Part shown: piece by piece, positions 1 to 32,884 of the stretch
Layout: each line of letters starts with the position of its first letter
Position numbering within the stretch: position 1 is the stretch's first letter
Assembly (NCBI RefSeq): GCF_001194135.2
Contig: NC_069001.1
Coordinates: 19,759,580 to 19,792,463, forward strand
Reading direction: 5' to 3'
DNA length: 32,884 bases
Source: Octopus bimaculoides
Taxonomy: Eukaryota
The notes under the pieces: model-generated
Told to the model about the DNA's origin: nothing
The model's database searches: none
What the model saw: only the letters and a program-made list of their open reading frames with translations
Translations under genes and position numbers: made by a program

Positions 1-190
1 TGTGATACACGGTCCCTATTGATCGCTTTTTTTCCCCGATCCCTTTTGATCGAACTCCCCCCTTTTTTCTTTCCTACGATCCCTTTTGATCAACCCCCCT
101 TTTTTTCTCTCCTTCCCCCTCCCCAAAAGAAACGCTCTACATTGTATTTGTCCCATTTGTGTTGAGCCCTGTGTGGCTAATAAAAGAATA
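1..190 (+). mobile_element. 3' end (3'UTR) of a Tx1/L1-like non-LTR retrotransposon
   Basis: Ends AGCCCTGTGTGGCTAATAAAAGAA and contains GATCCCTTTTGATC; both closely match the 3' end of the RT-bearing element at 4490-6590. Confidence 0.7.
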
Positions 191-276
191 GATAGATGGA
201 TGGATGGATATCCATCCATCTATCTATCTATCTATCTATCCATCCATCCATCTATCTATCTATCTATCTATCTATC
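189..276. repeat. (GATA/GGAT)n to (ATCC/TATC)n microsatellite with strand flip
   Basis: Direct reading; the repeat changes orientation around position 209/210. Confidence 0.9.
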
Positions 277-2074: not shown

Positions 2075-3935
2075 AATGTCGGTTGACACATCTAAGAAAA
2101 ATAAAAGAGCATCAATTTCTTTGGAGACCAAGATCAATATTTTGCATCGCCTTCGTGAGGGTGAAAGTAAGCTTTCTGCCTGAACGAAGCTACGATTAGA
2201 ACGATCAAGAGGATTCATGCTGCCATTAGATCTGTAGCCTCTGGAACAAAATTATCTGCAAAGTCGTTGTCAAGGGACATGACTCAAGAAAAAATGGAGA
2301 AAGCTCTAATAATATAGATAAAAGAAAATTTTAAAAAAAAGGATACCAGTAGATGGTAAAACCACAAAACAGATGGTATTACGATTTTACAAGAAGATTA
2401 ATGACCTGGAGTGCGTTACATCTGTCTTATGATAAAAAGAATGAATTTGCTGCAAGTTCGGGATGGCTTACGAAGGACACGCACTGCATAATATCAAAAT
2501 AAGAGGTAAAATTTCATCTGTAGATAAGACTGCTGCTGAAGAATTTCTTCCAAAACTAACCAAAATAATTGAAGAAGTCGGTTACATTTCAGACCAAGTT
2601 TTCAACGCAGATGAAACTGGTCTCTTTTGGAAAAAATTGCCTAACAGAGAAAAGTTCTTGTTATGTAGCAACGCTTCAGGAGATTGTTTGTTAAAACCGA
2701 TCGATTGTTTGTTAATTAATCGATCAGTTCATTGGCGAGCCAATAAAAAATCATGGATGACAGTAGAAATATTTACTGAATGGTTTAACAACTGCTTCGT
2801 TTCTGAAGTAAGAAGACATAAGATATATTATGAATGAACTAGAAAAAGATGATACACTTTCAATCTTTAAAGCATGGAAAAAATTTACTATAATTAATTG
2901 TGTTAATGATGCTGCCCTGGTTTTATCCAAATTAAAGCCATCCACCTTAAATGCATGTTAGAGATCACTTTGGCTAAAAAGCCTAAAAATCTCGTATCTA
3001 ATACCAACACGAACGAATTACATTCTATCATCACTTTGTCACATCAGATTGACAGAGAAGATTTTGAAGAATTAACAATTGACAAAGCTCCTAATGAAGA
3101 ACGAATTATAGTGAGTATTTCAGAGAATGTATATAATTCCACGTTAGTTTATAGTAGTGATGATGAAGAAGAGGTTCCACTATCTGCAAGTACAATTCTA
3201 GAAGGACTCCAAATAGCCAATAAACTTGGAAATAATTTTCTTACAAATAATAACGTAAAAGCTGAGACATGGCGAACAACAGTTAAGTCAAATAAGTAAA
3301 TACAATCATTCATCAACAGATGCTTACGTAGTATATTTAAAATTAGATGGCCCAAACACATAAGCAATATGGAGCTATGACAAAGAACAAATCAAGTTTC
3401 GATTAGGGAGCAAATCTTTAAGAAAAAGTGGAAGTGGATTGGTAGCACAATTAGAAAAGACACACCAAATGTAGCGAAAAGTGCTTTACAGTGGAATCCA
3501 GATGGATAAAGAAAGAGGGGTAGGTTTAAGAACTCGTGGCGTAGATTAAAACAAAAGGAACTAGAGAAAGGGGAACATTCATGGCAGAGTATAAGTACAG
3601 AAGCGAAAAATTATGCGACATGGAATTCAATTATAAGTGGCCTATACTCCGCGTTGGAGGGTTAAAGGCAAGAAAAAAAATAACAATGTTGAACGAGCTG
3701 TGCAATTCCAACGTGATTTGAAAATGATTATGCACGTTATGAAGAATCATATAAAAAACTAATAAAAACAAAATCACAGCGTCTGATAACCGAATTCGTA
3801 TTCAAAACAAGTGAAACAAAAGAAACCCAATATGTTAATTTTATTCAAGATGCACATGAAGATATATTGCAATTAAATGTTTCCGATGACGAGAGTGATT
3901 TTGCGCCACCGAAAAACAACAGAAAGCGGGCACGT
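2075..3935 (+). mobile_element. Degenerate Tigger/pogo (CENP-B-like, DDE_1) transposase, interrupted by an RTE fragment
   Basis: N-terminal KRASISLETKINILHRL HTH-like start; DQVFNADETGLFWKKLP; KSWMTVEIFTEWFNNCF; C-terminal NVERAVQFQRDL...KSQRLITEFVF resumes after 3680. Multiple stops and frameshifts. Confidence 0.85.
3257..3680 (+). mobile_element. 5'-truncated RTE-clade LINE (ORF2 C-terminus plus A-rich tail)
   Basis: Reads AETW...FINRCLRSIFKIRWP...KWKWIGSTIRK...ALQWNPDG*RKRGR..SWRR, the characteristic RTE ORF2 end, followed by AAGAAAAAAAA. Confidence 0.85.
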
Positions 3936-4489
3936 TTATATATATATATAAGCATAGATACATGTATGTATGTGTGTGTGTATATAGATTGATAGATAGA
4001 TAAATAGATAGGTAACTTTCTTTATTGGCCACACAGGGCTGAACATAGAAGTGACAAATACAAAGTAGAGTTTTTTTTTTTCGGGGAGTCGAAAACAAAT
4101 AAAAATAAAAATAGGGAAAACGATCAAAAAGGGATCAAAATCGTTTGGGATANNNNNNNNNNNNNNNNNNNNNNNNNNNNNNNNNNNNNNNNNNNNNNNN
4201 NNNNNNNNNNNNNNNNNNNNNNNNNNNNNNNNNNNNNNNNNNNNNNNNNNNNNNNNNNNNNNNNNNNNNNNNNNNNNNNNNNNNNNNNNNNNNNNNNNNN
4301 NNNNNNNNNNNNNNNNNNNNNNNNNNNNNNNNNNNNNNGACCACTCATGACTAGCTAGCGCGGGTGCGCGTTCGGGACCACTCTGCTTTAGTAGTACCTA
4401 TATATATATATATATATATATATAAGCATAGATACATGTATGTATGTGTGTGTGTATATAGATTGATAGATAGATAAATAGATAGGTAA

Positions 4490-6590
4490 CTTTCTTTATT
4501 GGCCACACAGGGCTGAACATAGAAGTGACAAATACAAAGTAGAGTTTTTTTTTTTCGGGGAGTCGAAAACAAATAAAAATAAAAATAGGGAAAACGATCA
4601 AAAAGGGATCAAAATCGTTTGGGATATCCAAAAGTCGAAATAGTACAAAAAGTTCCCAAAAGTGGGAAGTAAATCCGTGGAAAGAAAAACCTACGAAAAG
4701 ACCACGGTAACCTCGGGCAGTAATGTCATACAATAACACATTTACAAGTATGTAACTCTCATTCTTCCTTTGTTTTTTTTTATGGTTTATAGGATTATGT
4801 TCAAGGTGGCTCCGCCATTCACACGTGCCATCCTTGCTACATTCACCCATCTTTTGTTGAAGCATTCGCTAGACAAAACTTCCCTCTCTACTTTCACCTT
4901 CCTTTTCAAGTGATACTTGAAGTTGATGAGTGAGTAACCAGAGAGGAAAGTGTTTGTCTCTAGTCCTTTCAGACGCGTGAAGCACACACATTCTTTCGCC
5001 ATAACCACAAGTACGATAATAATGGCTCTTCCTTCCCGTTTGAAGGAAGGAGGCGCGACAATATTCACGATAGACCGACTTGTCCCACATGTGACAGCAG
5101 TCGTTCGACATAAGCCCATAGGTCGGAAATGGTTAGACACTGCACGAGTGCGTGCAGAACGGTTTCGTCGCTCTGACCGCATCTCGGGCAGGTCAGCCAG
5201 GTGTTTTTCGAGCCATACCTATAGAGCTTATTCCAGACGGGTAGCGCTTCTCGATAGCACTGCAAGGCCAGGGATCTCTGGAAGTTGTCCATAGGTCTCG
5301 GCCCGAAAGTCGTCTTGAACAGGCGGGTCAGGTATTCCTCGTCGATGCCCAGGTTCGCCCCGAGATCATCGTCGTACCTCCCCTCCATTAATCCCATATA
5401 GAATGCTTTGGTTGTAATGCAGTCGCTCAAGGTCGACCCGGGACGGCATAGTTGCTGGAGAGAAACGTGACACCCTCGGTGCCATTCGCCTTTCCTCGGC
5501 CTCTTCTTGATCCACGACTGCAGCTCGGCCATGGAGACGAGCTGCGAAAAAGCGCGCTGCATAAACGGCGACTACACCTGTCTACGCATCATCAACCACG
5601 GCATGCCCAGCCCTCCTTTTAGAGGGTGTTGGCAGCAAACCGATCGTCTGACCATCGGAGCACTTCCTTTCCAAAGGAAGTGGAAGAGGATGCGTTTCAG
5701 TTTGGTGAGGGTAGGGTCGGGACAAGGAACGACGGTCAGGTGGTAGTAGATGACGGACGCGATGTACACATTCGCCACCTCCGTCCGACCTTTTAGGGAC
5801 AACTTTCTCTCGGCCAATTGCCGGGAGAGAGTGGCCACCCTACTTGTTATCTCGTCCCAGTTCTTCTCCGCTTGGATGTCCGGACCAAATCAGACGCCGA
5901 GCAACTCGACCGGAGGCGCTGCTGGACGGCATGAGCTTGCATCTTCAGGTGCTGAGCCGCAAACCCACTAACTTTTCCCGGTTGATAGTCTTTCAGTATC
6001 CCGCCGACCAGCTCGATGTGCACGTGGCTAGACACTATGACGGTGACATCGTCCGCGTATGTGGACACGCTCATCCCGCACCCCAGTTCTCGCGGGATTC
6101 CCTTCAGCGTCGCCAGCTTCTGTAGTAGTGGCTTGAGAGTTAATACGTACAGAAGTGACGAAAGGGGGCATCCCTGACAGACCGAACGTGCGATGTCGAA
6201 AGGTCTCGATAGATGCCCGTTCACGCGAATTACCGAACGGATGCCTCTGTACAAGGCAGTCATCCAGCCGCGGAAGACAGGACCGAATCCGGCTGTTATG
6301 AGGACAGCCTCCAAGTATCTATGGCCTATCATATCGAAAGCTTTGGATTGATCCAAATTGATCAGGGCCCTACCCATACTAGGTTCTTTAACTATCCTGT
6401 CTACGATGTAGCGCATCAGATGGAGGTTGTCATAGATGCTCCGGCCCAGCACGGCGCACGTTTGCGCCTTGTCGACCAGTTTCTCGATGACAAGCGCCAA
6501 CCTCTTGGCCAAAATTTTCAAATCTGCATTGAGCAGAGTGATGAGCCTAAAGTTATCTATTACGTCCCCCTTGTTTGGAAGAAGATTCTT
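4490..6590 (-). mobile_element. 5'-truncated Tx1-like LINE: RT, C-terminal zinc finger and 3'UTR (pseudogenised ORF2)
   Basis: NFRLITLLNADLKILAKRL, NLDQSKAFD, QGCPLSSLLY, YADDVT, CPRCGQSDETVLHALVQC; ends AGCCCTGTGTGGCCAATAAAGAAA. Confidence 0.93.
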
Positions 6591-16807: not shown

Positions 16808-17210
16808 CGTGCGCCCCCCCNNNNNNNNNNNNNNNNNNNNNNNNNNNNNNNNNNNNNNNNNNNNNNNNNNNNNNNNNNNNNNNNNNNNNNNNNNNNNNNN
16901 NNNNNNNNNNNNNNNNNNNNNNNNNNNNNNNNNNNNNNNNNNNNNNNNNNNNNNNNNNNNNNNNNNNNNNNNNNNNNNNNNNNNNNNNNNNNNNNNNNNN
17001 NNNNNNNNNNNNNNNNNNNNNNNNNNNNNNNNNNNNNNNNNNNNNNNNNNNNNNNNNNNNNNNNNTGGGTTTTCGAACAACTCTGATCACGAAGAAATCG
17101 TGATTTAACTCCTGTCTTTCTCATATCCATCCAGTTGAGTAGTGCCTCGGTTTACGAACGTCTCTGACCACGAATAAATCGTGCTTTATATATCTGTATA
17201 TATATATATA

Positions 17211-17432
17211 TTTATTGAACACAGAGGGCTAAACATAGAGGGGACAAACAAGGACAGACAAAGGGATTAAGTCGATTACATCGACCTTAGTGCGTAACTG
17301 GTACTATTTAATCGACACTGAAAGGATGAAAGGCAAAGTCGACCTCGGTGGATTTGAACTCAGAATGTAACGGCAGACGAAATACAGCTAAGCATGTCGC
17401 CCAGCGTGCTAACGATTCCGCCAGCTCGCAGC
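17211..17432 (-). mobile_element. tRNA-derived CORE-type SINE with a Tx1-like 3' tail
   Basis: A-box-like TGGCGGAATCG, B-box GAGTTCAAATCC, CORE-like GTCGACTTTGCCTTTCATCCTTTC..GTCGAT..AGTACCAG; tail TTGTCCCCTCTATGTTTAGCCCTCTGTGTTCAATAAA. Confidence 0.85.
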
Positions 17433-17764: not shown

Positions 17765-18611
17765 NNNNNNNNNNNNNNNNNNNNNNNNNNNNNNNNNNNN
17801 NNNNNNNNNNNNNNNNNNNNNNNNNNNNNNNNNNNNNNNNNNNNNNNNNNNNNNNNNNNNNNNNNNNNNNNNNNNNNNNNNNNNNNNNNNNNNNNNNNNN
17901 NNNNNNNNNNNNNNNNNNNNNNNNNNNNNNNNNNNNNNNNNNNNNNNNNNNNNNNNNNNNNNNNNNNNNNNNNNNNNNNNNNNNNNNNNNNNNNNNNNNN
18001 NNNNNNNNNNNNNNNNNNNNNNNNNNNNNNNNNNNNNNNNNNNNNNNNNNNNNNNNNNNNNNNNNNNNNNNNNNNNNNNNNNNNNNNNNNNNNNNNNNNN
18101 NNNNNNNNNNNNNNNNNNNNNNNNNNNNNNNNNNNNNNNNNNNNNNNNNNNNNNNNNNNNNNNNNNNNNNNNNNNNNNNNNNNNNNNNNNNNNNNNNNNN
18201 NNNNNNNNNNNNNNNNNNNNNNNNNNNNNNNNGAATATTTTTTCGTGAAATTTGCTACAAAAATACCTTGATGTATGTACATTTCGAGCATGTAGGAATC
18301 TTGAAGGAAACAACTGCAGGTTATTTTTGAGAAGTGTTCCCCCACAAGGTGATGTTTCGGAGCAAGTCGTCCATATTTGTTTCATTTTTCTCTATTATGT
18401 GAGTAAGTGCATCCATAGGTTTCTAATGAAGTAATAGGCAGTGAAGAGAAGCCGTCATAAGAAAACTTTTAACTACCTCTATTCCTTTCTCACCCTCTCT
18501 CTACCTCTTCTTCTCTCGCTCTCTCAAACGCATACACGTGCAAGTACACAATCATTCAGTAAAATATAACTCATGTTCGTCAATGTTTTGTAAATATACC
18601 ACGATTTTCAC

Positions 18612-18855: not shown

Positions 18856-20005
18856 GTAATCGTGCGGGTGTTAATCTGAAAAATTACAGATATGTGAAAA
18901 GTACCGACCCTGCCATCTATTATAACTTTTGTTGTTCTGTTTAATATATACATAGATTATGCCTCCAAAGAAGAGAGTTTGCTGGGGAAAGAAAGCAACC
19001 GGTTTAAAATGACAGCAACAGACTGTAGCAATTCACCACATTCCAGAAGCTACTTTGAACATAATGCAAAATGGTGCATCAACATCTACTGCCCAATCTG
19101 ATAGAATTCTGGCAGAACNNNNNNNNNNNNNNNNNNNNNNNNNNNNNNNNNNNNNNNNNNNNNNNNNNNNNNNNNNNNNNNNNNNNNNNNNNNNNNNNNN
19201 NNNNNNNNNNNNNNNNNNNNNNNNNNNNNNNNNNNNNNNNNNNNNNNNNNNNNNNNNNNNNNNNNNNNNNNNNNNNNNNNNNNNNNNNNNNNNNNNNNNN
19301 NNNNNNNNNNNNNNNNNNNNNNNNNNNNNNNNNNNNNNNNNNNNNNNNNNNNNNNNNNNNNNNNNNNNNNNNNNNNNNNNNNNNNNNNNNNNNNNNNNNN
19401 NNNNNNNNNNNNNNNNNNNNNNNNNNNNNNNNNNNNNNNNNNNNNNNNNNNNNNNNNNNNNNNNNNNNNNNNNNNNNNNNNNNNNNNNNNNNNNNNNNNN
19501 NNNNNNNNNNNNNNNNNNNNNNNNNNNNNNNNNNNNNNNNNNNNNNNNNNNNNNNNNNNNNNNNNNNNNNNNNNNNNNNNNNNNNNNNNNNNNNNNNNNN
19601 NNNNNNNNNNNNNNNNNNNNNNNNNNNNNNNNNNNNNNNNNNNNNNNNNNNNNNNNNNNNNNNNNNNNNNNNNNNNNNNNNNNNNNNNNNNNNNNNNNNN
19701 NNNNNNNNNNNNNNNNNNNNNNNNNNNNNNNNNNNNNNNNNNNNNNNNNNNNNNNNNNNNNNNNNNNNNNNNNNNNNNNNNNNNNNNNNNNNNNNNNNNN
19801 NNNNNNNNNNNNNNNNNNNNNNNNNNNNNNNNNNNNNNNNNNNNNNNNNNNNNNNNNNNNNNNNNNNNNNNNNNNNNNNNNNNNNNNNNNNNNNNNNNNN
19901 NNNNNNNNNNNNNNNNNNNNNNNNNNNNNNNNNNNNNNNNNNNNNNNNNNNNNNNNNNNNNNNNNNNNNNNNNNNNNNNNNNNNNNNNNNNCTCAAAACA
20001 ATATT

Positions 20006-20046
20006 TGTGTATCGCGATTTCCGGGTTATTTCCCTTCATCAGCACA
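20006..20046 (-). ncRNA. Minimal type I hammerhead ribozyme (Penelope type)
   Basis: TGTG-CTGATGA-A-GGG AAATAA CCC-G-GAAA-TCGCGA-TA-CACA. Canonical core, palindromic stem III (ATCGCGAT), 4-bp stem I, predicted cleavage between 20010 and 20009. Confidence 0.75.
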
Positions 20047-20074
20047 GAATAATTGTTCGGCTAGAGGTGAATTT

Positions 20075-22400
20075 TTTATTAGGATAATTAATATCGTACA
20101 TAGGGGGGACAAAACAGGACAATACAAACAATTATTGTTATTATGAGCTTGTATTATACTTAGTTTTTAAAAATATAGAATGATATATAATCAAAATTTG
20201 AATTTTCCTTTTTTTGTGGGATGGGATTAAACCTGATGGGCTGAAAAGCAACTATACCTTTTCCTTTTCTCATGAGGATTAAGCAGAGTCACTTGCACCC
20301 ACCTTTCTTACCAGAGCGTTCCACCTTTTCTCGGACTCACCTCGCGACAGGCATCTCCTCTCCAGCCCTATCTTGTTCTTGAGATGATATCTGAAGTATG
20401 TCAGCAAACCAGGGAGATGAAGGATCCTGTCACGAGTCCTTGCAATTTTGTCTTCCACACACGCTCTTTCAACACTGCACCTGAACAGAGAAAACATGCC
20501 TCACCTTCTTTTGAGAGTCCGGTTGGCGACACAATCTTTATTATAGACTCAGCTGATAGCTGTACTGTGCCTAGGTGTGACAACACGTGTTCAACGTACA
20601 TTATCGAGCATGAAAGCTTCCGGCACTGTACAAAAGTGTGCTGGACGGTTTATCCTCCAGCCCACATCTTGGACATGCCGTTGGCACTGACATTCCGTGC
20701 TTGGATAACTTATCGCGAACAGGCAAAGCGTTCCTGTAGCACTGCCATGTCAGAGAATTTCGGTAATTATTCAAATACTCCGGCCTGAAAGTTTTTTGGA
20801 ACAGGTTGGCAAGTTGGTTCTCGTCGAACCCCAGCGCCCCTCCTAGGACGTCATCATTTTAAAACTCTACCAGCCCTTTATACAAAACCGACATGGTATT
20901 CCCACTGCCGGCCTTGCTCGTCTTGTGGATTAGCACGAGTGCCTGTCGACACTCCTTTTGCCATTCTGTCAGATTACATCTTTTAAAAAAACCGGGTTTG
21001 AATCTCTCCAAAGAGACTGGTCGCGGAAAGAATTCCTCCGCCAGCGGAATCCACACCTTGTTACCTGGAGGTACCTGGAGGTAGCGCCAGAGATGTTTCA
21101 GCCTCAACGCATGCCTGCGCATCATTAGCCAGGGCATCCCTAACCCATCCTCTAACGGTTCCTGACAGCAGACGGAGCGCCTCACAAGTGGCTTTCCCCC
21201 TTTCCACATTAAGCGGAAGAGGAGGCGCTCGAACTTGTTTAGCCACGAATCGGGGCAAAGGACATCGGTTAGGTGGTAGGTGATTACAGATGCAAGAAAC
21301 ACCTGTACCACCTTTGCCCTTCTTTTCAGGGACAGAGTCCATCCGGACCAACTCCAGACTAGGGCCTCCATCCTGACTGCCACCTCGCTCCAATTCTTCT
21401 CGGTCTGGGAGTCCGGTCCAAACCAAATTCCAAGCAACTTAACAGGACCATCTTTCCAGTGACTCTCGACACTCGACGATATCGACTTGCTCCTCCAGGT
21501 GCCGAGGCGCAAGCCGATTAACTTGTCCTTGTTAACTTTTGCTTCTGCCACTACCTCGTATCCTTTGTTAGCGTCCTCTCCACAAGGATGATGGTGACGT
21601 CATCTGCATAAGCAGAGACCAATTTATCGCATCCGATTTCATTGGGGGTACGACCCAAATTCCCCAACTTCCGCAGTAATGGCTCAAGAGCCAACATGTA
21701 CAGAAGCGGTGACAGGGGACACCCTTGACGAACTGAGCGCTTGATCGAAAACGATTCAGACAGGATGCCATTTATCTGAACTGTGGATTTGATGCCGCTA
21801 TACATTGCGGAGATCCACCTACGGAAGACCGGGCCCAGCCCAGCCGCTTCGAGGACCGCCTCCAGGTACTGATGGTCTACCATATCAAACGCTTTACTTT
21901 GGTCTAAATGGACCAGTGCCCCACCTTTGCCGGTTAATTTACCCAACCTGTCTAAGATGCAGCGTATAAGGTGAAGATTGTCATGCATCAACCTGCCTGG
22001 AATGGCGCATGTCTGCGCCTTCCCTACAAGCTTCTCCACGACACGCATCAATCTTCTTGCTAACACCTTGGCCAAAATCTTTAACTCTACATTGAGTAGA
22101 ATTATGGGCCTGTAATTACTTTTAATGTCCCCCTTGCTCGGGTCCTTCTGGATCAGCGTCACCATTCCCCGACTCACAGAGCTGGGAATCCTCCCATTCT
22201 GTTGCCAGTTTGTGTAGACGTCTGCCAGCAGGTCCCCGAACAAGTCCGGCATGCTACGATAAAACTCATAGGGTAGACCATCCAACCCCGGCGACTTGTC
22301 CCCAGCGCACTTGGCCAACACCTCTTTGACCTCCACATGTGTAATCGGTCCTTCACAGCATTCTGACTAACGTGCCGAGAGTCGCGGCCCACCAGCGAGG
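20075..22400 (-). mobile_element. 5'-truncated Tx1-like LINE (RT, C-terminal domain, 3'UTR)
   Basis: KSPGLDGLPYEFY, NYRPIILLNVELKILAKVLARRL, HLDQSKAFD, RQGCPLSPLLY, AYADDVT. ORF2 stop at about 20279; 3'UTR ends TTGTCCCCCCTATGT...CCTAATAAAAAA. Confidence 0.95.
21551..22336 (-). pseudogene. Tx1 ORF2 reverse transcriptase domain (261-aa open stretch)
   Basis: RT motifs are in one frame; a frameshift follows YADD. Confidence 0.9.
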
Positions 22401-22419
22401 AAGCCCTTTAGGGACTCCC

Positions 22420-23565
22420 CACGCTCGAGCGTGGAAGAGAATGGTGGTTTCTTCCTAATTATCAGGGTAAAAAGCCAACGAAGATTAGGGTGGGAAGGAT
22501 CCAACCGACAATTGAGCCAGAATGGCCACTGGCAGCAATTTTTACTGCAGAAAATGAAGAAAACGAAACTGAGTTTTCTTATGATAACCAGAACCCAACA
22601 AGTAAATTGTTGGGGGTATGGTTTCGAGGTTATTATCACGGTAAGTCAAAGACTATATGAGACAATTCCGGAAACACTAGAACTGCTGAATGGAGACAAA
22701 CTGGATATAATGTTGGAGAGGAGACTTCCAAAGTGCTATGAATGTGGCGAAAGAGGACACATTAGAAGAAGGTGCCCGAAAATAACGGAAAACGTAGAAA
22801 TGGAAAGGCAAGACGGCGTGATGGATGGAAAGAAACAGACACAGGAAAAGGAACAAAAAGCCGAGTTTGTAGAAGTCAAGTCAAGGAAGGACTCATCGCC
22901 GAAAGTTGAACAAGGAAACAAATATAAATCACTGGAACAAGTGGGATCACCAAAGAAAGAGGATAAAAGCAGAACATCACTAAATAAACATACAGACTCG
23001 CAATCACACAAACAAACAGATTCACAGACTCGTAAACACACAGACATACATATACACGGAAGCATACTAGATAACACAGAGTTGCAGAAACCTAAAAGCA
23101 CAGACACACAAACACAACATGCAGACTTACAGTCACAAAAAACATGCAGACCCGCAGACAAATAAACACACAGACATACAGTCACAAAGAAACATAGAAA
23201 AACAGACGTGTGATCATGCAGAGTCACAAAAACGAAAAAGAACAGACATGCAGACACAAGAGGTGCACCGGAACAGAATATATTTGATAACATATCGGTC
23301 GACACAAAAAATAGAACTCAGCGCTCCAGTGGTGAACAATGAGGAAATTAAGAACAATATAAAATGGTAAGTAGAGATTTATTTTGAAAAGAACTGTTGA
23401 GGACTGTTGAAATAATTGAAATAACGTTACCACCCCGGAGCGGGGCTAGGGTGGCCGTCCCATCTTCATTGTATAATTTCACTATTCCATTCTTTCATGT
23501 GTTAAATGTGCCTGAATGTGTGTATTGTCTTATTCATGTTTAGCCCCTTGTGGGTAATAAAAAAA
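22420..23565 (+). mobile_element. 5'-truncated ORF1-only Tx1-derived element (family D, copy 1)
   Basis: LPKCYECGERGHIRRRCP knuckle and H/T/D/Q-rich repeats, then directly a 3'UTR ending AGCCCCTTGTGGGTAATAAA(A)n. No ORF2 sequence in between. Confidence 0.85.
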
Positions 23566-23574
23566 AATCATTAA

Positions 23575-25009
23575 AAAAATTCATAGTATATTCCATCCGG
23601 TACTTCATTTGTGTCAAATACCATTTTTCTGCATTCCGCGCTTTCTTTACAGTCTCTTATTATTTTCATTCTGTATTCTGGCACTAATGCGCCTAAAACC
23701 ATTCTTTCTATTTTCATTCCCTTCATGTCTATCACTTTTCTATCTTTCCATTGTACTAACTATTCCACCACATCCTTTTTTACGCCTTTCACTAAAGCAC
23801 AAACAAAACAAGTGGGAAGGGCGTTTTGCAATTTTTTTGTATGACAGCTGTTCTTTTTTGTGTCGGAGGGGAATACGTGGGTTTGGTGTCTGCAGGGGAG
23901 GGTGGGGTTGAGAGGGTATGTGTGGGATGGGTGCGGGCTGGGGTTCACTTAACCTGTCCTTTTCCCACTTCCTCTGTTTTCTCCCCGTATATTTCCATCC
24001 ATCCTCCTCATTTCTTTCTTCTATCATTTCTGGTTCCTTCTCTGCTCTTTCCTGGGTTGGCTTATTTTTCAGAGGGCAGTCGGCTCTAATGTAGCCTTGT
24101 TGACCACATCTATAGCAACGAAAGGATCTGCCTTCTACCCACACTTTCATCACTGTTTCTCCAATTGTCACCGTTTCCACGAGCAACTCCAAGTTTTCCA
24201 GCTTACTCTGTATTATTAGTTCCAAAATTCGACCGCATCAATTAGTGGCTTCCGTTTCTGTGGCTTGGAGTACCGTGACCTCTTTCTTGCTTCCTAGAAG
24301 CACAGCCGCCGCTACCCAAGCCACATCCATTTTATGGGTTGATTCCCTCCACTCTGACCTTGGACGTTCTTCTTCCAAGGTATATGGGTAGAAGGATTAC
24401 CCTTTCCGCTTTCATTGATTTTGTTGAGCTTTCCCTCGCTTTCAGCTTGTTCTTACGGCATCTCAACGGTGCTGTATTGGCTTACTCTGGCAAGATACGC
24501 TATGTTTTGCCAGATAGGCCTCAACGCCTTTTCAATTTCGTCCGTCTGTTTATTCTCTATCCTTTTCTCCTTGACAGGAGATTGTATACAATCTTCCTTT
24601 CTTCCATTTCCCTTATTATTTCTTGTGGTGGTGACAATTTCACATCACCACCTTCTTTTTTAGCATATTTTCATGATTCTTCAAATTTTTGAGGCTCACC
24701 CCCTCCTTGCCACTCCAGTTACTCTCGCAAAAGTTTTCTCCTTTATAGCTCTATCCATCTTCATTACAGCTTCTTCCAGCTCCTCTTCAGACGACGACAG
24801 TTCCGAATATGACACCTCCGACTCACTCACGTCCGAACAAGTTTCCGCCATCCTTCCTCAAACTGTTGAGGGACAGCTTCACAAAAAAAACAAAAAAAAA
24901 ACCCAGCTGCAACGCCGCTCACAAAATATTATAATAACAGACGAGACCACGTGGAACGAACTCACATAACCTTGGTAACGGCAAATTATCAATAAAAAGC
25001 GAAAAAAAA
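23575..25009 (-). mobile_element. Tx1-type element copy E: 5' head and degenerate ORF1
   Basis: Head GTTATGTGAGTTCGTTCC; EIEKALRPIWQNIAYLAR homologous to the ORF1 at 28371-29285; RCYRCGQQGYIRADC knuckle. Confidence 0.8.
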
Positions 25010-25027
25010 AATTGCTGGGCTAAAGGT

Positions 25028-25190
25028 TTATTCTAGGCACAAGGTCCAAACACACAGGGGACATACATAGAGATGCGGGGACAAACAACAAGTGAAAATG
25101 ATTAAATGAATATAATACAATGATATGAGACGGCTATCTCTGCCCCGCTCCGAGACGAAACCATTATTTCCTTGTATACAATTAAATCAA
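25028..25190 (-). mobile_element. 3'UTR/end of a family-D-like element
   Basis: CGGAGCGGGGC...GCCGTC.CAT.TCATTGTAT matches 23435-23480; ends GTGCCTAGAATAA. Confidence 0.7.
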
Positions 25191-25299
25191 NNNNNNNNNN
25201 CATTTCCCTCCGACACAAAAAAGAAAAAAAGAACAGCAGTCATACAAAAGAATCGCAAAACGACCTTCCCACTTGTTTTGTTTGTGCTTTAGTGAAATA

Positions 25300-28200
25300 T
25301 TTCTTTATTGCCTACTAGGGGCCGACAAAGATGGGGACCACACAACCTGATTTGGGGTCAGATGTTCGATATGTAATTACAATAAAAATGAAGTTAAAAA
25401 TTAAAGCATATATGAACGAATGATTATACATTACAAAAAGCGAAATACGTTTGTAAGGTGCGGCTGGAGATAAAGCTGCCTGTCTTGACTCCTTTCATCC
25501 TTGTCTTCCACACCGCCTCTTTCGCTTCGCTATTGCTACTACGATGCGAAAGCAATTCTTACCTTCATTTGTTAAAAATCCAGGTGGGTCAATTTTTATG
25601 ATTAACTCAGCCGACAGCTGTACTCTCCATGTGCCGGACAACAGATGTTCCGCATAAGCCCACATTTCCGATACTTCTGGACACTGAACAATAGCGTGCG
25701 GGACGGTTTCTCAATCCCGCGTATACCATGTCTTGCAAGCTTATCCCAAACGGGCAAGGCACTTCTGTAACATTGCCAGGTCAAAGATTTTTGGAAATTA
25801 TCCAACGACCTCAACCCGAATGTACGAAGGAACAGGCTGTCAAGTTGAATATGCCAGAGACCAAGACTCTCCCCCAGGCCATCGTCACATTCAGCATCTA
25901 CTAATCCTCTATAGAAGAATGCTGTAGAATCCCCACCGCTGGTATTACCCAAGCGACGGAATAGCAAGAGGGCCTTACGGCACTCCGTATGCCATGCACT
26001 CAACCTCGATCTACGAAAGCACCAGTCTTCCCGTCCGCAAAAACTAGCGAACTCGGGTAACATCTGTCTTGCTAGCGGAGACCACACCCGTTCACCATCC
26101 AGGAGAATCCAGAGATGCCTCAACTTCAGCGCATGTCTGCGCATCATCAATCAAGGCATTCCTAATCCTCCTTTTAACGGTCTTTGGCAACAGATAGAGT
26201 GTCTCACAAGTGGCGGAAGAGCTGTCTCTCCAACTTGATTAACCACGAATTCGGGCAAGGAACGACGGTCAGGCGGTGGGTAATGACCGATGTGATAAAA
26301 ATATTAGCCACCTCCACCCCCACTTTCAGGGATAGCTACCGCCAAGACCAGGTTTTGACTATGGAGGACACCCTGCTCGAAACCTCATACCAGTTCTTCT
26401 CTACCTGGAGATCTGGTCCAAACCAGACCCCTAGCAACTTAATCGGTCCCTCTGTCCAGCGTACAACGACGCTATCTGAAGGCATCGACTTGCACCCCTC
26501 CCCCCAGGTGCCGAGTTGCTAGCCGACTGATTTTCCCCGGTTAATCTTTGCTCCTGCCACCGTCTCGTAAACCTCAATAGCCTTGCCTACTTCATGTAGG
26601 CGTGCCATTGTGGTCACGCTGATGGTGATGTCATCCGCAAAGGCTGAAACAAATTTCTCATATCCTGGCTCATATCCGAGCGTTTGATACAGGACGGCTT
26701 TGAGAGAAAACCGTTAATCCGAACTATCGAGTCAATGTTGTGATACAATTGAATGATCTATCTAAGAAAGCCAAGACCCAAGCCAAACTGCACAAGAACA
26801 GTCACCAGGTACCGATGGTCAACCCTATCGAAAGCTTTAGATTGGTCTAAACGTACCAATGCCCCACCTCTGCTAGATCTATCCCCAAACCTCTCTAAGG
26901 TATATCTCCACCTTATCTAAGGATAAGGTGGAGATTATCCTGAATGGTATATGTCTGTGCCCCACCCCCATCAGACCATCCGCGACACGCGTCAACCTTT
27001 TTGCTAATACCTTTGCCAAAATCTTCACATTTAACAGAGTGATGGGCCTGAAATTATCTAAACAGTCCCCCTTGTTCGGTTTCCATTCTGACCCACATCT
27101 CCACTCCTCGGCGTACATATCTGGGGATAAACCCATTCTGTTGCCAGTTCGCGTACACATTGGCTAGCAGGTGCCCGAACAAGTCTGGCATACACTTATA
27201 CAGCTCGTGGGGAAGACCTTCCAGTCCCGGCGACCTACTCATGCCGCAGTCAGCCATAGCCTCTATCACTTCCCCAGGCGTGATCGGCCATATTCTATGG
27301 TTCATTTTAAGGCGTACCACCATTTGTTATTAATGATGGTACCTGTTAACGCCCTCTGAATTAAATATTTAATTCGCTTTCTGTACTCCTCAATCGCCAA
27401 AAGGGACGTATTGAGTTTCCAGTACCCAGATCCCTGTCTATGCATCTTATCTACGTTCAGCTACAGGTAACCACCTTGTTACTGTAGCTGACTGGATAAA
27501 ACTGTGGACACTTAACTATATCTTATCTACCTTTCTAATCAAAATCCTATCTAAATATGATCGGGAAGACCCGTCGCTGTTTGACCATGTCCACAATGGA
27601 GCGTCTGGGTGTTCCAACCTATATAGGTCTGCCAGATGGAAATAGCTTAGCAGATCCCGAAAACCAGGGTTACACGTCCTATCCTTTCTCGAGCCAATAC
27701 AATCTACGCGCGCATCGCAGATTGTGTTTAAAGTCTCCTAACAGAATGCGACGTGGCTAGAAATTTACCTAGGTCACGAAAACATTCACTTTGTGGACTA
27801 ATAAGATTGGGTGCATTAACTGCAACCAGCCTGACTGTCTTGCCGCAACTGAAAGTCAAGTCCAGAACGATCAGCCCGCTTTCTGGATCAGAAAAAAAAA
27901 ATCAACTTTTTCTCTGAAATCCGGTTTCTTTTTAATAGGAACAACACCCCACTTCTACCTTCTACCTGACACGGAAAAACGTATTTCTCGTAGCCGTTCA
28001 GGAGGGGGAGAAGATCTCTTGGCTCTCTCAACCAGGTTTCTGTAGCAACAATTACATCTAAATCCCTGCGACCTGATGTCATTTAGGAAGCGTCCTTGTT
28101 TCCAGCTCGACATCAGGCCACGTACATTCAAACAACCAATGTGAATAGCCATAAAGTTGTCTTAGTTTTTTAATTTGAATTATCAGGTGGAGGAGGAGTT

Positions 28201-29340
28201 TTCACCTTTTCCTTTTCGTCTTTTCGCGGGATCTTACGATAATTTGTTCTGTAAAATTCTGAGTCTTATTTGAGACTTCATATACATCATAGTTGGTAAA
28301 TTTCTCCGAAATGTTATCAACATTTTTTGCAGTCTTTAACAATTGAATGTCTCTCATTAGCTCGGTATCTTTAGTATATGCGGCTATTATGCCTTTTTCC
28401 TCTTTTTCTCTTCTGGCAATCTTTTTTGGTTGTTGGTCTGTAGTAGTCGCTGCTCTCGGTTGAGTTGTTGATTGTAATTTTCTTTTGTTTGTTTTCTTCT
28501 TCTTCTTCTTCCTTGTAATTCTTTCGAATGTGGCCTAATTGGCCACACAAAAAACATCGGGGTTTTCCGCCCTCAACATATACTATGAGGGCCTCCTCCC
28601 CTATCTCAATTTTCTCGGGAATCGCTTTAATTGTTTTAGGTTCCGCCTGAATGAGGAAATTGACTGTTTGATCAGTCCAGTTAGCTTTTTCGGTGACAGC
28701 AGCCTGGAGGAGAGTAATTTTCTCCTCCTGGTTGATTAGGACTGCCACCACCAACCACATAGGATCCACTTCCGGTGGGACCCTTGTGATTTTGATTCTG
28801 GACGTTCTCATCCTCATATAGGTGAGGATGAGTGCCATGTTCGTCTTCAGCGTTTCTACTGAATGTCTTTGTGCTATTTCTTTGCTAGTAAGCCTTACTT
28901 CCACCGTTCCAAATTTCCTGCCTCTTGTCAGATAAACCACGTCGCTCCAAATTGGTTTCAGGCACTTCTCTATCTTCTCTTCTGTAATTTTCTCAATTCT
29001 TCTTTGCAACGGGGAATCAAAAATTCCATTTTTAGTGGTCGATGACATGTAATTCTTCCTCCCAACGAGGGAATCAAAAATTTCTTTATCAGTAGTTGAC
29101 CTCTCGCCAGACGACATGTAATTCTTCCTCTCAACAGAGAAAACAAACATTTCTGTTTCAATGGCAGGCTCCTCGCCAGACAACATTCTCCCCCCCCCCA
29201 CCAACGGGAGAACGAACAATGCGGGCTTTCTACAAGTACTTAGACAGTGCTTTGCAAAGAAAACAGTTATTAACAAATTCGACAATTTAACAAGAAACAG
29301 CAGTTATTAACAATAAAAAATAGCAATTTTGACAACGAAC
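25300..29340 (-). mobile_element. Near-full-length two-ORF Tx1-like LINE (copy G), degenerate, deleted between EN and RT
   Basis: ORF1 28371-29285; ORF2 starts 28152 (CLNVRGL, DVIVATETW, LGDFN-like, WTWSNSDGSSRSYLDR, GSGYWKLNTSLL); RT 27320-26580; C-terminal region; ends GGCAATAAAGAAA. Confidence 0.92.
28371..29285 (-). CDS. Tx1 ORF1p (RRM-like region plus CCHC zinc knuckle), 304-aa open frame
   Basis: KIEKCLKPIWSDVVYLTRGRKFGTVEV...VYVEGGKPRCFLCGQLGHIRKNY (last Cys mutated). True start codon uncertain. Confidence 0.7.
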   Translation of the reverse strand: MSNLLITVFFAKHCLSTCRKPALFVLPLVGGGRMLSGEEPAIETEMFVFSVERKNYMSSGERSTTDKEIFDSLVGRKNYMSSTTKNGIFDSPLQRRIEKITEEKIEKCLKPIWSDVVYLTRGRKFGTVEVRLTSKEIAQRHSVETLKTNMALILTYMRMRTSRIKITRVPPEVDPMWLVVAVLINQEEKITLLQAAVTEKANWTDQTVNFLIQAEPKTIKAIPEKIEIGEEALIVYVEGGKPRCFLCGQLGHIRKNYKEEEEEENKQKKITINNSTESSDYYRPTTKKDCQKRKRGKRHNSRIY

Positions 29341-29369
29341 GAGGAACTCTCCACACGCGGTTATTCTTC

Positions 29370-29480
29370 TAAAGACTCTAACGACTATCCTGTCTATATA
29401 AGATCTGTGTGAGCCGTCGTTATTACTCCATGTCCACTGTGGAACGCTCGGCTCATCCAGTCTGGAACGGTCTACTAGAT
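29370..29480 (-). mobile_element. Isolated Tx1 APE endonuclease fragment
   Basis: PSVPQWTWSNNDGSHRSYIDRIVV, paralogous to 27560-27620. Confidence 0.75.
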
Positions 29481-29489
29481 TATAGCAAG

Positions 29490-30640
29490 GGCAGTTATGA
29501 TAACCACAACCCAACAAATAAATTGTTGGGAGTATGGTTTGGAGGTGGTTTTCACGGTAAGTCAGACAGTATACAATACCAAACCGGAGACACTGGAACT
29601 GCCAAACGAGGACATGCTGGATATAATGTTGGAAGGGAGACCTCCAAAGTGCTATGAATGTGGCAAAAGAAATCACATTAAAAGAAAGAGCCCAGAAATA
29701 ATGGAAAACATAGAAATGAAAACGCAAGAAGGCGTGATAGAGGAGAGTAAACAGACACAGGAAGAGGAACAGAGAGCTGATTTTGAGGAAACTAAGTCAA
29801 GGAAGAGAGAAAGGAAGGGCTCATTACCGAAAGTTGAACAAGGAAAGAAATATAAATCACAGGATCAAGTGGGATCACCGAGGAAAGAGTATAAAAGCAG
29901 AACATCACCAAAGAAACATACAGACTCACAATCGCACAAACAGACAGATTCACAGACGCATAAACACACAGATATACATATACACGGAAGCATACTAGAT
30001 AACACAGAGTTGCAGAAATCTAAAAGCACAGAACTTGAAATCACAGACACATAGACACAACATGCAGACTTACAGTCACAAAAACATGCTGACCCACAGA
30101 CAAATAAACACACAGATATACAGTCACAAAGAAGAACAGACGCCTGATAGTACAGAGTCACAAAAACAAAAAAGAAAGACATGCAGACGCAAGAGGTGCA
30201 CAGGAGTAGAATATATTTGATAACATATCGGTCGACACAAAAAATTGAAAGGAAAATAACTAAACTGAAAGGCATTGTTAAAGTGGACCTCTCGGAGGGT
30301 TACAATAAGGAGACGAGATGGATTTTAATGAAAAAAGATAAGTATAGAAAGTTAAAAGAGGCTTTTCCATTAGATATAAACCAACTGGGGCCCGAGGTGA
30401 ATTTCAAACCCATCGCTCCAATGGTGAACTACGAGGAAATTAAGAACTATATAAAATGTTAAGTAGAGTTTTATTTTGAAAAGAACTTGAAATAATTGAA
30501 ATAACGTAACCACCCGGAGCGGGGCTGGGGTGGCCGTCCCATCTTCATTGTATAATTTAACTATCCCATTCTTTCATGTGTTGATTGTCCCCGCATGTGT
30601 GTATTGCCCCATCTATGTTTAGCCCCTTGTGGGTAATAAA
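29490..30640 (+). mobile_element. 5'-truncated ORF1-only element (family D, copy 2)
   Basis: Colinear with 22570-23565; LEGRPPKCYECGKRNH; C-terminal LGPEVNFKPIAPMVNY; ends AGCCCCTTGTGGGTAATAAA. Confidence 0.85.
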
Positions 30641-30644
30641 TCAG

Positions 30645-31437
30645 TTACAGGATTTACCTATTTTCCCTTTTTTTTAAACAAAATGTTTAACCAAATATTT
30701 TTCTGTCTTTCACAATTTTTAAAATAAATCACGACTTACCACTTTATCTTCTCCTTTTTGTCCACATAATTCACCACCGAGGCACGAGGTTCAACATCCA
30801 CCTCCGGCCCTAGTGGATTCACTCTTTCATAATGTCTTTCAATTTTGAAATTCTTTTAACTTTTAGGGAGTCCTATTTCATTTAAAAACCTTGCTTCTGT
30901 TTGTGTCTTACGTGTTTGTGTTTTTTGTCTCTGTATGTCTAATTTTTGGCCTTCCTCTGATTGTGTCTCTGTGTCCGTGTGTCAGTGTGTTTGTGTGTCA
31001 GTGTGTTCGTTTGACTGTGATTCGGAGTGTTTCGTCTGTATTTCTATGTTTTTAGGTTTCCGTAATTCTGAGTTATCTTGTTTCTGTTCGTCTATACTTC
31101 TGTGCTTTTGCATGTTTGTGTGTCTGTGGGTCTGAATGTATATGTACTTGCAAGTCCTTTACTGGTGATTCTACTGGTAAATTTTCCCCGTTTCTCGTCG
31201 TAGGTTAGATTACCTCTTCCATTGTTTTGTAATTCTTCAGTTCCACTATCGTTGGTGACTTCCTCCTCTCTCTTTTCTGTTTGCTTTCACCTCCGCAAAA
31301 TTCCCGTCTGGTTCTGTTAACTGTTTCTGTTGTTTCTCCACTATTATATTGTCCTGAATACTCTCCTCTACAATTTCCACTGCTGCTCTCGGGCATTTCT
31401 TTCGCAAGCGCCCTCTTTCACCATATTCGTAACACTT
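30645..31437 (-). mobile_element. ORF1 3' half of a family-D relative (copy F)
   Basis: PTKCYEYGERGRLRKKCP; later NPLGPEVDVEPRASVVNY, homologous to the family D C-terminus. Confidence 0.75.
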
Positions 31438-31480
31438 TGTGGGTATCGCGATTTCCGGGTTATTTCCCTTCATTAGCACA
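31438..31480 (-). ncRNA. Second copy of the minimal hammerhead, probably inactive
   Basis: Same block as 20006-20046, but the core is CTAATGA (G5 to A) and stem I is disrupted. Confidence 0.6.
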
Positions 31481-31509
31481 GAATAATTTGTTCGGCTAGA
31501 GGTGAATTC

Positions 31510-32560
31510 TTTATCACAATAATGAATATCATATAAAGATTGGACAATACGGGATAATACACACAAATAATGTTATGATGAGTTCCAATGTAACTTATGG
31601 ATTAAAAATATTGAAGAAATATATATGTATAATATATTTTAACTTTACTCTTTTTTTTGGGGGGGGGGGATTATACCTGGTTGCCTGAAAGGCCCAGTAG
31701 CTATCCTTTTCCTTTTTCTAATGACGATTAAGTAGGGTTACTTACATCCACCTTTCTTATCACAGCCTTCCATCTTTTTTCAAACAAGCTTCGCGATAGA
31801 ATCCTCCTCTCCAGCCCTGTATTGCTCTTCAGATGGTATCTGAAGTATAGTAGCAGTCCCGGACCGGAGATGAAGGATCCCGTTACGACTCCTTGCATTC
31901 TAGTCCTCCACACACACTCTTTCATCACTGTAACTGTAGAGAGAAAACATTCTTCACCTTCGTTTGAGAGTCCGGTTGGTGGCACAATCTTTATTATAGA
32001 TTCAGACGATAGCTGTACTTTACCCAGATGTGACAACATGTGCACTACGACAGTGTACAAGAGCGTGTTGAACGGTATCCTCGCCCAGCCCACATCTTGG
32101 ACATGTCGGTGGCACTGACGTTCCGTGCCTGCATAACTTTTCGCAAACAGGTAAAGCGTCCCTATAACACTGCCAGGTCAGGGATTTTTGGTAATTATCC
32201 AAATACCCTGGCCTGAAAGTGTGTCTCCTCGTTGTTACTTGTAAAGCCCTTTCCCATCGCAGGGAAATCCTTTCGGGATGCAATGTTAAATTCCATCACA
32301 ACACTTTTTAAACCTAGTCACAAATGACAAATTCACAGAAATTAATGTAATACCCAGTCACGGGTAAAAAAAAAAAGCAGCTCAATAAGTTTTCAAGATA
32401 ATATTCTAAGAGAATGTTCTGCCCTGTAGGGCGAAAATTACTGTTTCTCGACGTACAACAGTTCAAAGGAAAACAAAGTATCCAAAATATGGCATACAAA
32501 AACACACAGGAACGAACTCACATAACGTTAGGTAGCAAATTCTCAATCACGACGCAAAAA
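31510..32560 (-). mobile_element. Internally deleted Tx1 element (copy H): 5' head/UTR fused to ORF2 C-terminus and 3'UTR
   Basis: Head motif at 32509-32526 is identical to 24953-24970; NYQKSLTWQCYRDALP, CPRCGLGEDTVQHALVHC; 3'UTR colinear with 20075-20280; 18-19-bp motif on both flanks. Confidence 0.82.
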
Positions 32561-32580
32561 AATTGTTTGGTTAGAGGTAG

Positions 32581-32760
32581 TTTCTTTATTTGAGCAGACA
32601 GGCTCTTACAAAGAGGGGACGATACATGGACAGACAACAACACAGTAGGGTACATAAAAATATATAACGAATGAAATAATGAATTATAATGATAAAATGA
32701 TAAAATGAAAAATGCAATGTTTTACCTGCCCCCCATTCGCAGGCAGTGTCATTTTACTGT
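32581..32760 (-). mobile_element. 3'UTR/end of another Tx1-type element
   Basis: Ends GTCCCCTCTTTGTAAGAGCC...AATAAAGAAA; GTCCCCTCTTTGTAAG is shared with the end of copy C. Confidence 0.7.
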
Positions 32761-32884
32761 TCATTTATAACATTTAACATACAGTTCATTGTTCACTTTT
32801 TGCATCGTTTTTTAAAAGTCACTATTTAAAATTTTAAACATTTTACTTATTTCATTTACATTATGTGTTCTATTAAGTTTTTAA

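Follow-up and report, generated by a model that had tools for sequence, protein, structure and literature searches.

The stretch of Octopus bimaculoides DNA analysed here (contig NC_069001.1, positions 19,759,580 to 19,792,463), which we refer to as the window and which is 32,884 nt long, carries long interspersed nuclear elements (LINEs) of the L1/Tx1 kind. In its 20-33 kb part a short sequence follows the 3' ends of several of these LINEs. Beside two copies of this sequence lies a block that a preliminary description had read as a Penelope-type hammerhead ribozyme repeat, targeted site-specifically by a Tx1 lineage. Open reading frames (ORFs) on the minus strand match RVT_1 (7e-26) and zf-RVT (1.4e-8), a stitched endonuclease region matches Exo_endo_phos weakly (2.7e-4, under the Pfam cut-off), and the ORF1s carry a CCHC knuckle (zf-CCHC). 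This is a Tx1-type architecture: ORF2 combines an apurinic-type endonuclease and a reverse transcriptase (RT) with a zinc-binding region at its C-terminus, and ORF1 lies upstream. The closest solved structure is human L1 ORF2p (9e-33, as against 1e-19 for R2), and the database relatives are unnamed eukaryotic proteins at ~50% identity, together with one cuttlefish protein at 46%. By these domains the elements fit the L1/Tx1 group, the features being common to the L1 clade and not separating Tx1 from L1.

A pattern scan of the window together with a 3'-end alignment gave a set of at least 10 LINE tails. The 3'-end consensus of the superfamily is ...GTCCCC..TGTTTAGCCC.TGTGGGnAATAAA, after which come a few A-rich bases usually ending in YAC. 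Four of the tails abut one and the same motif and three run into microsatellites; in three further cases, those of Y1 (23561), Y2 (30640) and a tail at 25292-25312, the flank is unique. The motif is an 18-mer of the ACCTCTAGCCGAACAATT type. We scanned for it with up to 3 mismatches, using both the chance expectation and 100 shuffles as controls, and found it at 20051-20068, 25010-25027, 31486-31503 and 32561-32578, in all cases on the minus strand and with 0-3 mismatches. These four copies compare with 0.02 expected by chance, and none of the 100 shuffles reached four. The junctions that they mark are as follows.

20051..20068, minus strand: junction motif A, ACCTCTAGCCGAACAATT, between the tail of element E_A and the hammerhead-like block.
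31485..31503, minus strand: junction motif B, ACCTCTAGCCGAACAAATT, between the tail of element E_B (copy H) and the hammerhead-like block.
32561..32578, minus strand: junction motif C, ACCTCTAACCAAACAATT, between the tail of element E_C and the T-run and head of E_B.
25010..25027, minus strand: junction motif D', ACCTTTAGCCCAGCAATT, between an orphan Y-like 3' untranslated region (3'UTR) and the T-run and head of element E_E.

All four copies lie within 10 nt of the A/GATAAA of a LINE 3' end, as had been described before; in minus-strand reading the AATAAA or GATAAA precedes the motif by 0-6 nt, and the bases directly after the four tails are CT(C/T)TA(G/A)CC.A.CAATT. In every case the motif has a tail on one side and, on the other, the 5' boundary of a further retroelement unit, which is a full-length head at two of the sites (C and D') and the same ORF1-derived fragment at the two others (A and B). 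Motifs C and D' are followed by a T-run and then by a common head of ~75-100 nt, in which GTTATGTGAGTTCGTTCC, present twice (24953-24970 and 32509-32526), lies ~35-40 nt downstream of the motif; the head at D' leads into an ORF1 that starts near 24850. These tandem junctions, where the motif runs into a new element head and no ribozyme intervenes, are real, as is the sharing of the head. After motifs A and B comes ATTCTGTG, and then the block.

Homology between the loci begins at the motif and runs downstream, the tails upstream of it being of different subfamilies. The similarity of C and D' (high-scoring segment pair, HSP, 24953-25027 versus 32509-32578) starts exactly at the first base of the motif and extends into the head. 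Since the C and D' tails differ in subfamily, D' being nearer to Y1 and Y2 than it is to C, two tails have been joined independently to the same motif-plus-head; counting A/B as well, tails of at least three subfamilies meet the motif at the same base. Six further tails of the superfamily in the window end in AATAAA..YAC with unrelated flanks and without the motif, and it follows that the motif is a flank common to a subset of insertions and not a part of the tail. The possibility that it is the element's own 3' tail is ruled out by these six tails, and here we agree with the preliminary description, which had argued the same from the tandem junctions lacking a ribozyme. The motif is therefore a real, non-random junction sequence, and it is likely to be a preferred insertion or junction site; specificity of the endonuclease for it is what we infer from this.

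Copy H, the unit at 31504-32560, has the motif at both ends, and this pair had been taken for a target-site duplication (TSD). The two motifs are indeed there. They differ from each other by 2 substitutions and 1 indel in 18-19 nt, whereas the 3' motif of copy H equals the locus A motif apart from one extra A. The flanking copies thus mismatch each other more than the 3' copy mismatches that of A, and the pair makes a weak candidate for a TSD.

The fourth of the tails, the one at motif D', is of a different standing from that first ascribed to it. To the left of a gap at 25191-25200 lies a 163-nt 3'UTR (25028-25190, minus strand) that is closest to the 3'UTRs of two units named Y1 and Y2, with 90 of 122 columns identical to Y2. 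To the right of the gap lies a 96-nt inverted piece of ORF1 (25202-25297), 86% identical to 23787-23874, and past it a separate tail, GGCAATAAAGAAATATTTCAC, at 25292-25312, just downstream of an ORF2 C-terminus (25436-25665). The ORF2 copy at 25436-27323 has, in other words, its own motif-less tail, which makes the fourth "Tx1 3' end" an orphan fragment. The motif does follow a tail at 25010-25027; the tie of that tail to the ORF2 copy falls away, as a gap and the inverted ORF1 piece intervene and continuity across them is not supported by the sequences on the two sides. Either the locus was rearranged here or the inverted copy is the product of a misjoin.

Loci A (19997-20792) and B (31431-32220) align as a single colinear HSP, ~800 bp long and with 77% identity. 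Within it stands an island of much higher conservation, covering the motif and the block.

20009..20073, minus strand: island copy A, consisting of AATTC, the motif, ATTCTGTG and the hammerhead-like stretch up to GCGATAC.
31443..31508, minus strand: island copy B, 64/66 against A, with CUAAUGA (G5 to A) and a weaker helix I.

The two copies are identical in 64 of 66 columns, and the earlier observation that the block differs at 2 of about 66 nt while the adjoining 3'UTRs are more diverged is borne out. Outside the island, identity is 76-81% in the C-terminal part of ORF2, 68% in the 3'UTR and 59% in the next 17 nt (Fisher tests of the island: p = 2e-7 against the 3'UTR, p = 1e-4 against the following 17 nt). 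At A the contig stops 17 nt beyond the island, at the 873-nt gap that spans 19119-19991. In the same copy CUGAUGA occupies 20042-20036, and the predicted cleavage falls between 20010 and 20009.

Read on the minus strand, copy A has the order UGUG, CUGAUGA, A-GGG-AAAUAA-CCC-G, GAAA, UCGCGA, UA|C, ACA, and the hammerhead core is complete at 20042-20010 (C3-U4-G5-A6-N7-G8-A9, G12-A13-A14, A15.1-U16.1, H17). Helix I has 4 bp, helix II 3 bp and helix III 2 bp with a CGCG loop, AUCGCGAU being an 8-nt palindrome. An intact core is found only in A: copy B, with CUAAUGA, has lost the essential G5, and its helix I pairing is weaker. Helix II consists of GGG/CCC only, flanked either by an A.G at 10.1-11.1 or by two additional bases, an A following A9 and a G preceding G12. 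We searched with a strict descriptor that requires the 10.1-11.1 pair and with a relaxed one that does not, against a background of 2000 dinucleotide shuffles. The G10.1-C11.1 closing pair next to the core is missing, and the strict descriptor has no match in the whole window. The relaxed descriptor matches A only, with a chance expectation of 0.017 per window. This is notable for one window and unremarkable genome-wide: if a window of 32.9 kb is typical, a few hundred chance matches are to be expected in a genome of 0.5-1 Gb.

The Rfam hammerhead families gave no match at the gathering score in the window, nor at E ≤ 10 when the two loci were searched as 209-nt and 251-nt slices. On thermodynamic folding the minimum free energies are no better than those of shuffles (z-scores -0.5 to +0.9), and the two island copies show no compensatory change in the helices. 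A self-cleaving ribozyme 3' of every insertion, as had been proposed, is not borne out by these results: G5 is lost in B, and Rfam match and folding signal are both wanting. We also considered a small RNA gene as the target (small nuclear RNA, small nucleolar RNA with its C-box, 5S, tRNA) and rejected it, there being no Rfam support and no UGAUGA box in B.

On the evidence of its reading frame, the block is most likely a decayed ORF1 segment from just upstream of the zinc knuckle, derived from a non-autonomous, ORF1-only relative of the LINEs. In B the frame stays open through the block (...SVLMKGNNPEIAIPTKCYEYGERGRLRKKCP...), and from the L of VLMKG onward it matches the ORF1-only unit Y1 by tblastn (E = 3e-13, 172 residues), a match that starts inside the block and with which the DNA alignment agrees. 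In a protein alignment that sets the fragments of A and B beside five more ORF1 copies, SVLMKGNNP, encoded by the first half of the block, falls on the V.VEG..P motif before the knuckle, its counterparts being IVYVEGGKP, DIMLEGRPP and TVVVEGRKP; compared with the other ORF1s, six extra residues, EIAIPT, follow it. Taken alone, the block resembles Y1 only modestly at the DNA level (p = 0.006 for A, 0.04 for B). The knuckle of B is destroyed (CYEYG...R...C), which marks the unit that it belongs to, Y3, as an old pseudogene. The G5-to-A change in B is a synonymous CTG-to-CTA in the ORF1 frame, and the hammerhead resemblance would most likely stem from codons, with Leu-Met-Lys giving CUGAUGA, Gly and Pro giving GGG/CCC, and Glu-Ile giving GAAA. 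Next to neither block did we see a Penelope reverse transcriptase, a GIY-YIG endonuclease or a flanking repeat (pLTR). The claim of a Penelope-type hammerhead repeat as the target thus runs against a block that continues in frame into an ORF1 remnant with a CCHC knuckle, outside any pLTR context.

Around these junctions the 20-33 kb part holds the following units.

20069..22345, minus strand: E_A, a 5'-truncated L1/Tx1-like copy with RVT_1, the C-terminal region of ORF2, a 3'UTR and the tail ..AATAAAAAATTCAC.
22579..23561, plus strand: Y1, an ORF1-only unit with an intact zf-CCHC knuckle, ending in GGGTAATAAA, no motif.
23570..25009, minus strand: E_E, with T-run, head, 5'UTR, ORF1 (start near 24850; knuckle CYRCGQQGYIRADC) and a short N-terminal stretch of the RT.
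25028..25190, minus strand: D', an orphan 3'UTR fragment ending in AGAATAAA, ~74% identical to the Y2 3'UTR and bounded by a gap.
25292..25312, minus strand: tail of E_D, GGCAATAAAGAAATATTTCAC, followed by an unrelated flank, no motif.
25436-27323 (RT and C-terminus), ~27400-28250 (endonuclease) and 28371-29285 (ORF1), minus strand: body of E_D.
29495..30640, plus strand: Y2, a second copy of the Y1-type unit (83-86% identical), 5' and 3' ends as in Y1, no motif.
30650..31476, minus strand: Y3, a decayed ORF1-type remnant that starts inside the block, with VLMKGNNPEIAIPT, a damaged CCHC knuckle (KCYEYGERGRLRKKCP) and a low-complexity tail.
31504..32560, minus strand: E_B (copy H), an internally deleted unit of 1.06 kb with T-run, a head of ~100 nt, the ORF2 C-terminus (zf-RVT), a 3'UTR and the tail GATAAAGAATTCAC.
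32579..32884, minus strand: E_C, 3'UTR and tail (..CAAATAAAGAAACTAC) of a further copy that leaves the window.

Y1 and Y2, ~1.0-1.15 kb in size, share a 5' end (ATGATAACC...) and a 3' end (GGGTAATAAA), and their flanks are unrelated. They code only for the C-terminal half of ORF1 (the CCHC knuckle and a long low-complexity tail) ahead of a LINE-like 3'UTR, so that by sequence they look like an ORF1-only non-autonomous LINE derivative. Y3 finishes as they do, with ...VVNYVDKKEKIKW, a stop and the start of a 3'UTR, and then meets Y2 in a tail-to-tail junction. The head-plus-ORF1 piece of E_E is without an endonuclease domain, and its RT stretch stops at the Y1 insertion. The same N-terminal RT motif (PDGIYYEFF, GLDGLPYEFY) occurs on both flanks of Y1, at 23575-23700 and 22250-22345 (minus strand), with DNA identity of ~70%. 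The head-plus-ORF1 piece thus belongs to one element and the RT-to-tail piece to another, and a simple nesting of Y1 within a single E_E/E_A element is ruled out by this duplication at only ~70% identity. A further broken LINE piece, a short C-terminal endonuclease fragment (PQWTWSNNDGSHRSYIDRIVV), lies at 29380-29445 (minus strand), with the Y2 5' end on one side and the 5' region of the 28371-29285 ORF1 on the other.

The reading to which we give about an even chance is that the 20-33 kb part is a nest of minus-strand, head-to-tail arrays of L1/Tx1-like LINEs, in which incoming copies prime upstream of the motif and the block is an ORF1 remnant. Incoming copies would be nicked and primed at AC|CTCTAG (AC|CTCTAGCCGAACAATT), directly upstream of the motif on the 5' edge of resident units. 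The process would be target-primed reverse transcription with a Tx1-style site preference, the target being a sequence of 16 nt. Repeated insertion of this kind could have built the head-to-tail arrays, with E_C, E_B and Y3 in one place and D', E_E...E_A and Y4 in the other. The earlier proposal of site-specific Tx1 insertion would then survive in its first half, the recurrent junction at which several subfamilies meet the same base, and lose its Penelope hammerhead target.

Several observations weigh against this reading. The island is too sharply bounded (64/66 against 59-81%) for decaying ORF1 code, given that the knuckle adjoining it in B is destroyed. On its 3' side it ends no more than 1 nt from where hammerhead cleavage is predicted. 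The block also carries, in comparison with the five other ORF1 copies, an insert of 15-18 nt (GAAATCGCGATAC..) just before the knuckle, at 31443-31460 and 20009-20023 (minus strand), which contains a perfect 8-nt palindrome, ATCGCGAT; this palindrome, the GAAA box and the cleavage site are exactly what the insert brings. There is a likeness to metazoan type-I hammerheads (PMC4209133) in the AAAUAA loop, in the palindromic helix III and in the A left unpaired after A9. With Y2 the block shares no significant DNA similarity. A and B could, moreover, represent one event that was later duplicated, leaving only ~3 independent junctions, and the evidence comes from one window only. As to what made the island, we would tentatively name a 5'-terminal or target-recognition constraint in a non-autonomous unit, a read-through template that was copied in target-primed reverse transcription, or gene conversion over a short tract.

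A serious alternative, even if on balance we hold it to be unlikely, does without target specificity. The motif would be the true 5' terminus of the RNA, and the junctions would arise by end-to-end template jumping of the RT, which would lay down chimeric arrays in single events. This agrees with the contiguity in homology of the motif with the downstream unit at 4/4 sites, with exact joins of tail to 5' end that show no convincing TSD, and with a diverged motif-like stretch that by eye also precedes the ATTG.TAAT..TGC head element in E_D; conservation of the first ~60 nt in a non-coding derivative would suit an internal promoter. At two places, though, it would call for three-part chimeras. 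Each of the four recognisable 5' ends (4/4) follows a tail and none an ordinary genomic flank, and the Tx1 clade is known for site-specific insertion (PMC4494074), both of which count against it.

Still less probable, in our view, is that a single composite array was duplicated locally and then diverged, with the island as a short gene-conversion tract or a contig-end assembly effect and that neither specificity nor function is involved. The colinearity of A and B extends over 800 bp, and the two lie 11.4 kb apart in one orientation; both arrays are ordered tail, motif, head ... tail, motif, block; and the assembly does contain gap artefacts (3937-4152 is identical to 4411-4626). Yet the C and D' tails are not homologous copies of each other, the sequence from at least 900 nt downstream of A and B is unrelated, and the last 17 nt of A are not B-like, so that simple borrowing at a contig end does not fit.

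We also retain a small chance that the island is a functional minimal type-I hammerhead module tied to a site-specific L1/Tx1-like LINE, either setting the 3' end of the template by self-cleavage at GAUA|C or serving as a conserved target. A former ORF1 segment would have acquired its GAAA box, a dimer-forming palindrome and the cleavage site through an insertion of 15-18 nt. It is the sharpness of the island, its edge at the cleavage site and an insert that supplies parts of the core that keep us from giving up the ribozyme altogether.

The target version of the ribozyme, that of the preliminary description, appears very unlikely to us. It holds that the motif and the 45-nt block form a multicopy Penelope or retrozyme hammerhead repeat targeted by a Tx1 lineage, with the motif as TSD and an active ribozyme 3' of the insertions. 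Copy A does fit the relaxed type-I descriptor (0.017 expected per window), and its 2-bp helix III with a palindromic CGCG loop and its extra nucleotide after A9 are as in metazoan and Penelope hammerheads (PMC4209133). The island is 97% conserved, copy H has the motif on both sides, and the contig at A breaks 17 nt past the island, as is possible at high-copy repeats. Against these stand the reading of the block and the sequence downstream of it as one ORF1 remnant with a CCHC knuckle, the want of an adjoining Penelope ORF or flanking repeat, the G5-to-A change and weakened helix I of B, a helix II of 3 bp, as against the 6-8 bp and conserved G10.1-C11.1 of the minimal hammerheads of Penelope (PMC4209133), the failure of Rfam to match at E ≤ 10, and the two motifs of H, which differ more from each other than its 3' copy differs from that of A. 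The least probable reading makes the motif and hammerhead a 3'-terminal module of the RNA of the E_A/E_B subfamily, cleavage at GAUA|C setting the template end and the sequence beyond being the target: the island does start near the poly(A) signal and stop within 1 nt of the predicted cleavage site, where identity falls from 97% to 59% with a 2-nt difference at the junction, and a type-I hammerhead would stay on the upstream cleavage product and so be heritable, but the island and knuckle of B form one in-frame ORF1-like segment, which would need insertion at the exactly homologous ORF1 position (the main objection), the other tails of the superfamily end at YAC without the module, C and D' carry the motif and no block, the core of B is dead, and the sequence downstream of A is known for 17 nt only.

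Site preference of the kind that we favour has precedents. LINEs of the Tx1 clade are documented to insert site-specifically into other transposons, microsatellites and small RNA genes (PMC4494074): Tx1L is found in the Tx1D transposon of Xenopus and Tx1-Mar in Mariner-N4_AMi, Tx1-8_Crp and Tx1-4_AMi insert into retrotransposons with long terminal repeats (LTRs), and Kibi and Koshi into microsatellites (PMC4494074). The elements of the window share with them an L1-like endonuclease and RT, 3' ends that recur at one short sequence inside repeats, and sister tails that abut microsatellites. They differ in that the recurrent sequence is here the 5' edge of LINE-derived units, resulting in head-to-tail arrays, and in that no empty target was seen in the window. 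Head-to-tail joins of retroelements that result from insertion-site preference are also the subject of McGurk and Barbash (bioRxiv 10.1101/158386, PMC5932611), who are reported to describe tandem transposable element dimers that form when one preferred site is hit repeatedly; their elements and junction motif are not those found here.

The likeness to known hammerheads is more partial. Penelope minimal hammerheads have a helix II of 6-8 bp with a conserved G10.1-C11.1, canonical forms one of 4 bp (PMC4209133). With the type-I hammerheads of Penelope elements and metazoan retrozymes (PMC4209133, PMC7229834) copy A shares CUGAUGA, GAAA, UA|C and the extra nucleotide after A9, as well as a short helix I and a helix III that is very short and has a palindromic loop. 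It departs from them in a helix II of 3 bp, an unprecedented extra G before G12, and the want of an Rfam match and of covariation; nor is there a flanking-repeat context or a tandem or nearby partner, G5 is changed to A in one of the two copies, and the frame is ORF1-like. A looser parallel is the HDV-like (hepatitis delta virus-like) ribozyme at the 5' end of R2, which is reported to process the co-transcript of a site-specific LINE (cited in PMC3414825). What is common is the idea of a self-cleaving RNA at the junction of such a LINE and the neighbouring transcribed sequence; the R2 ribozyme cuts its own 5' end and stays with the element, whereas a type-I hammerhead here would stay with the upstream RNA.

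If the site preference holds genome-wide, a Tx1-like lineage would be targeting the edge of its own relatives, a new case of the documented Tx1 site specificity, and the building of head-to-tail arrays would be one route from dispersed retroelements to tandem repeats. Of far more consequence would be the ribozyme, since we know of no LINE with an apurinic-type endonuclease, and found none in a literature search, whose RNA end is defined by a hammerhead; the present evidence gives the idea no support. The main practical value of the block is as a caution that conserved ORF1 codons can mimic a minimal hammerhead.

Searches directed beyond these loci gave little. A fuzzy search for empty motif sites within the window found none. 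Protein searches with the ORF spanning the block of B, and with the C-terminal end of ORF2 (aimed at 3' ends elsewhere), returned no homologues, and neither a 23-mer nor a 21-mer taken from the island had a match when metagenome contigs were scanned for exact copies. A related LINE locus from an ENA assembly (L001, ~50% RT identity) carries no motif; as a comparable array it was set aside, its ORF2-to-ORF1 join being a different rearrangement in a GC-rich genome.

Elsewhere in the window, the three microsatellite-abutting tails (CCCTGTGTGGCYAATAAA or CCCTCTGTGTTCAATAAA) lie at 167-225 (plus strand), 4470-4512 (minus strand) and 17190-17228 (minus strand), and meet (GATA/GATG)n, (CTAT)n and (TA)n, respectively, at plus 167, minus 4512 and minus 17228. 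By analogy with some Tx1-clade families they may represent a microsatellite-targeting sister lineage. The segments 3937-4152 and 4411-4626, each 216 bp, are 100% identical and flank a gap at 4153-4338; the pair is most likely an unmerged contig overlap, that is, an assembly artefact. It doubles a LINE tail with a (CTAT)n flank, the tail at minus 4512 having its duplicate at 4038. Gaps such as 1494-1624 and 17765-18232 are edged by (TA)n-type microsatellites (YIYIYI in the ORF translations), which probably caused these assembly breaks. Finally, an ORF at 2463-2837 (plus strand) with ...DQVFNADETGLFWKKLP... is, judging by eye, presumably a fragment of a pogo/Tigger-type DDE transposase.

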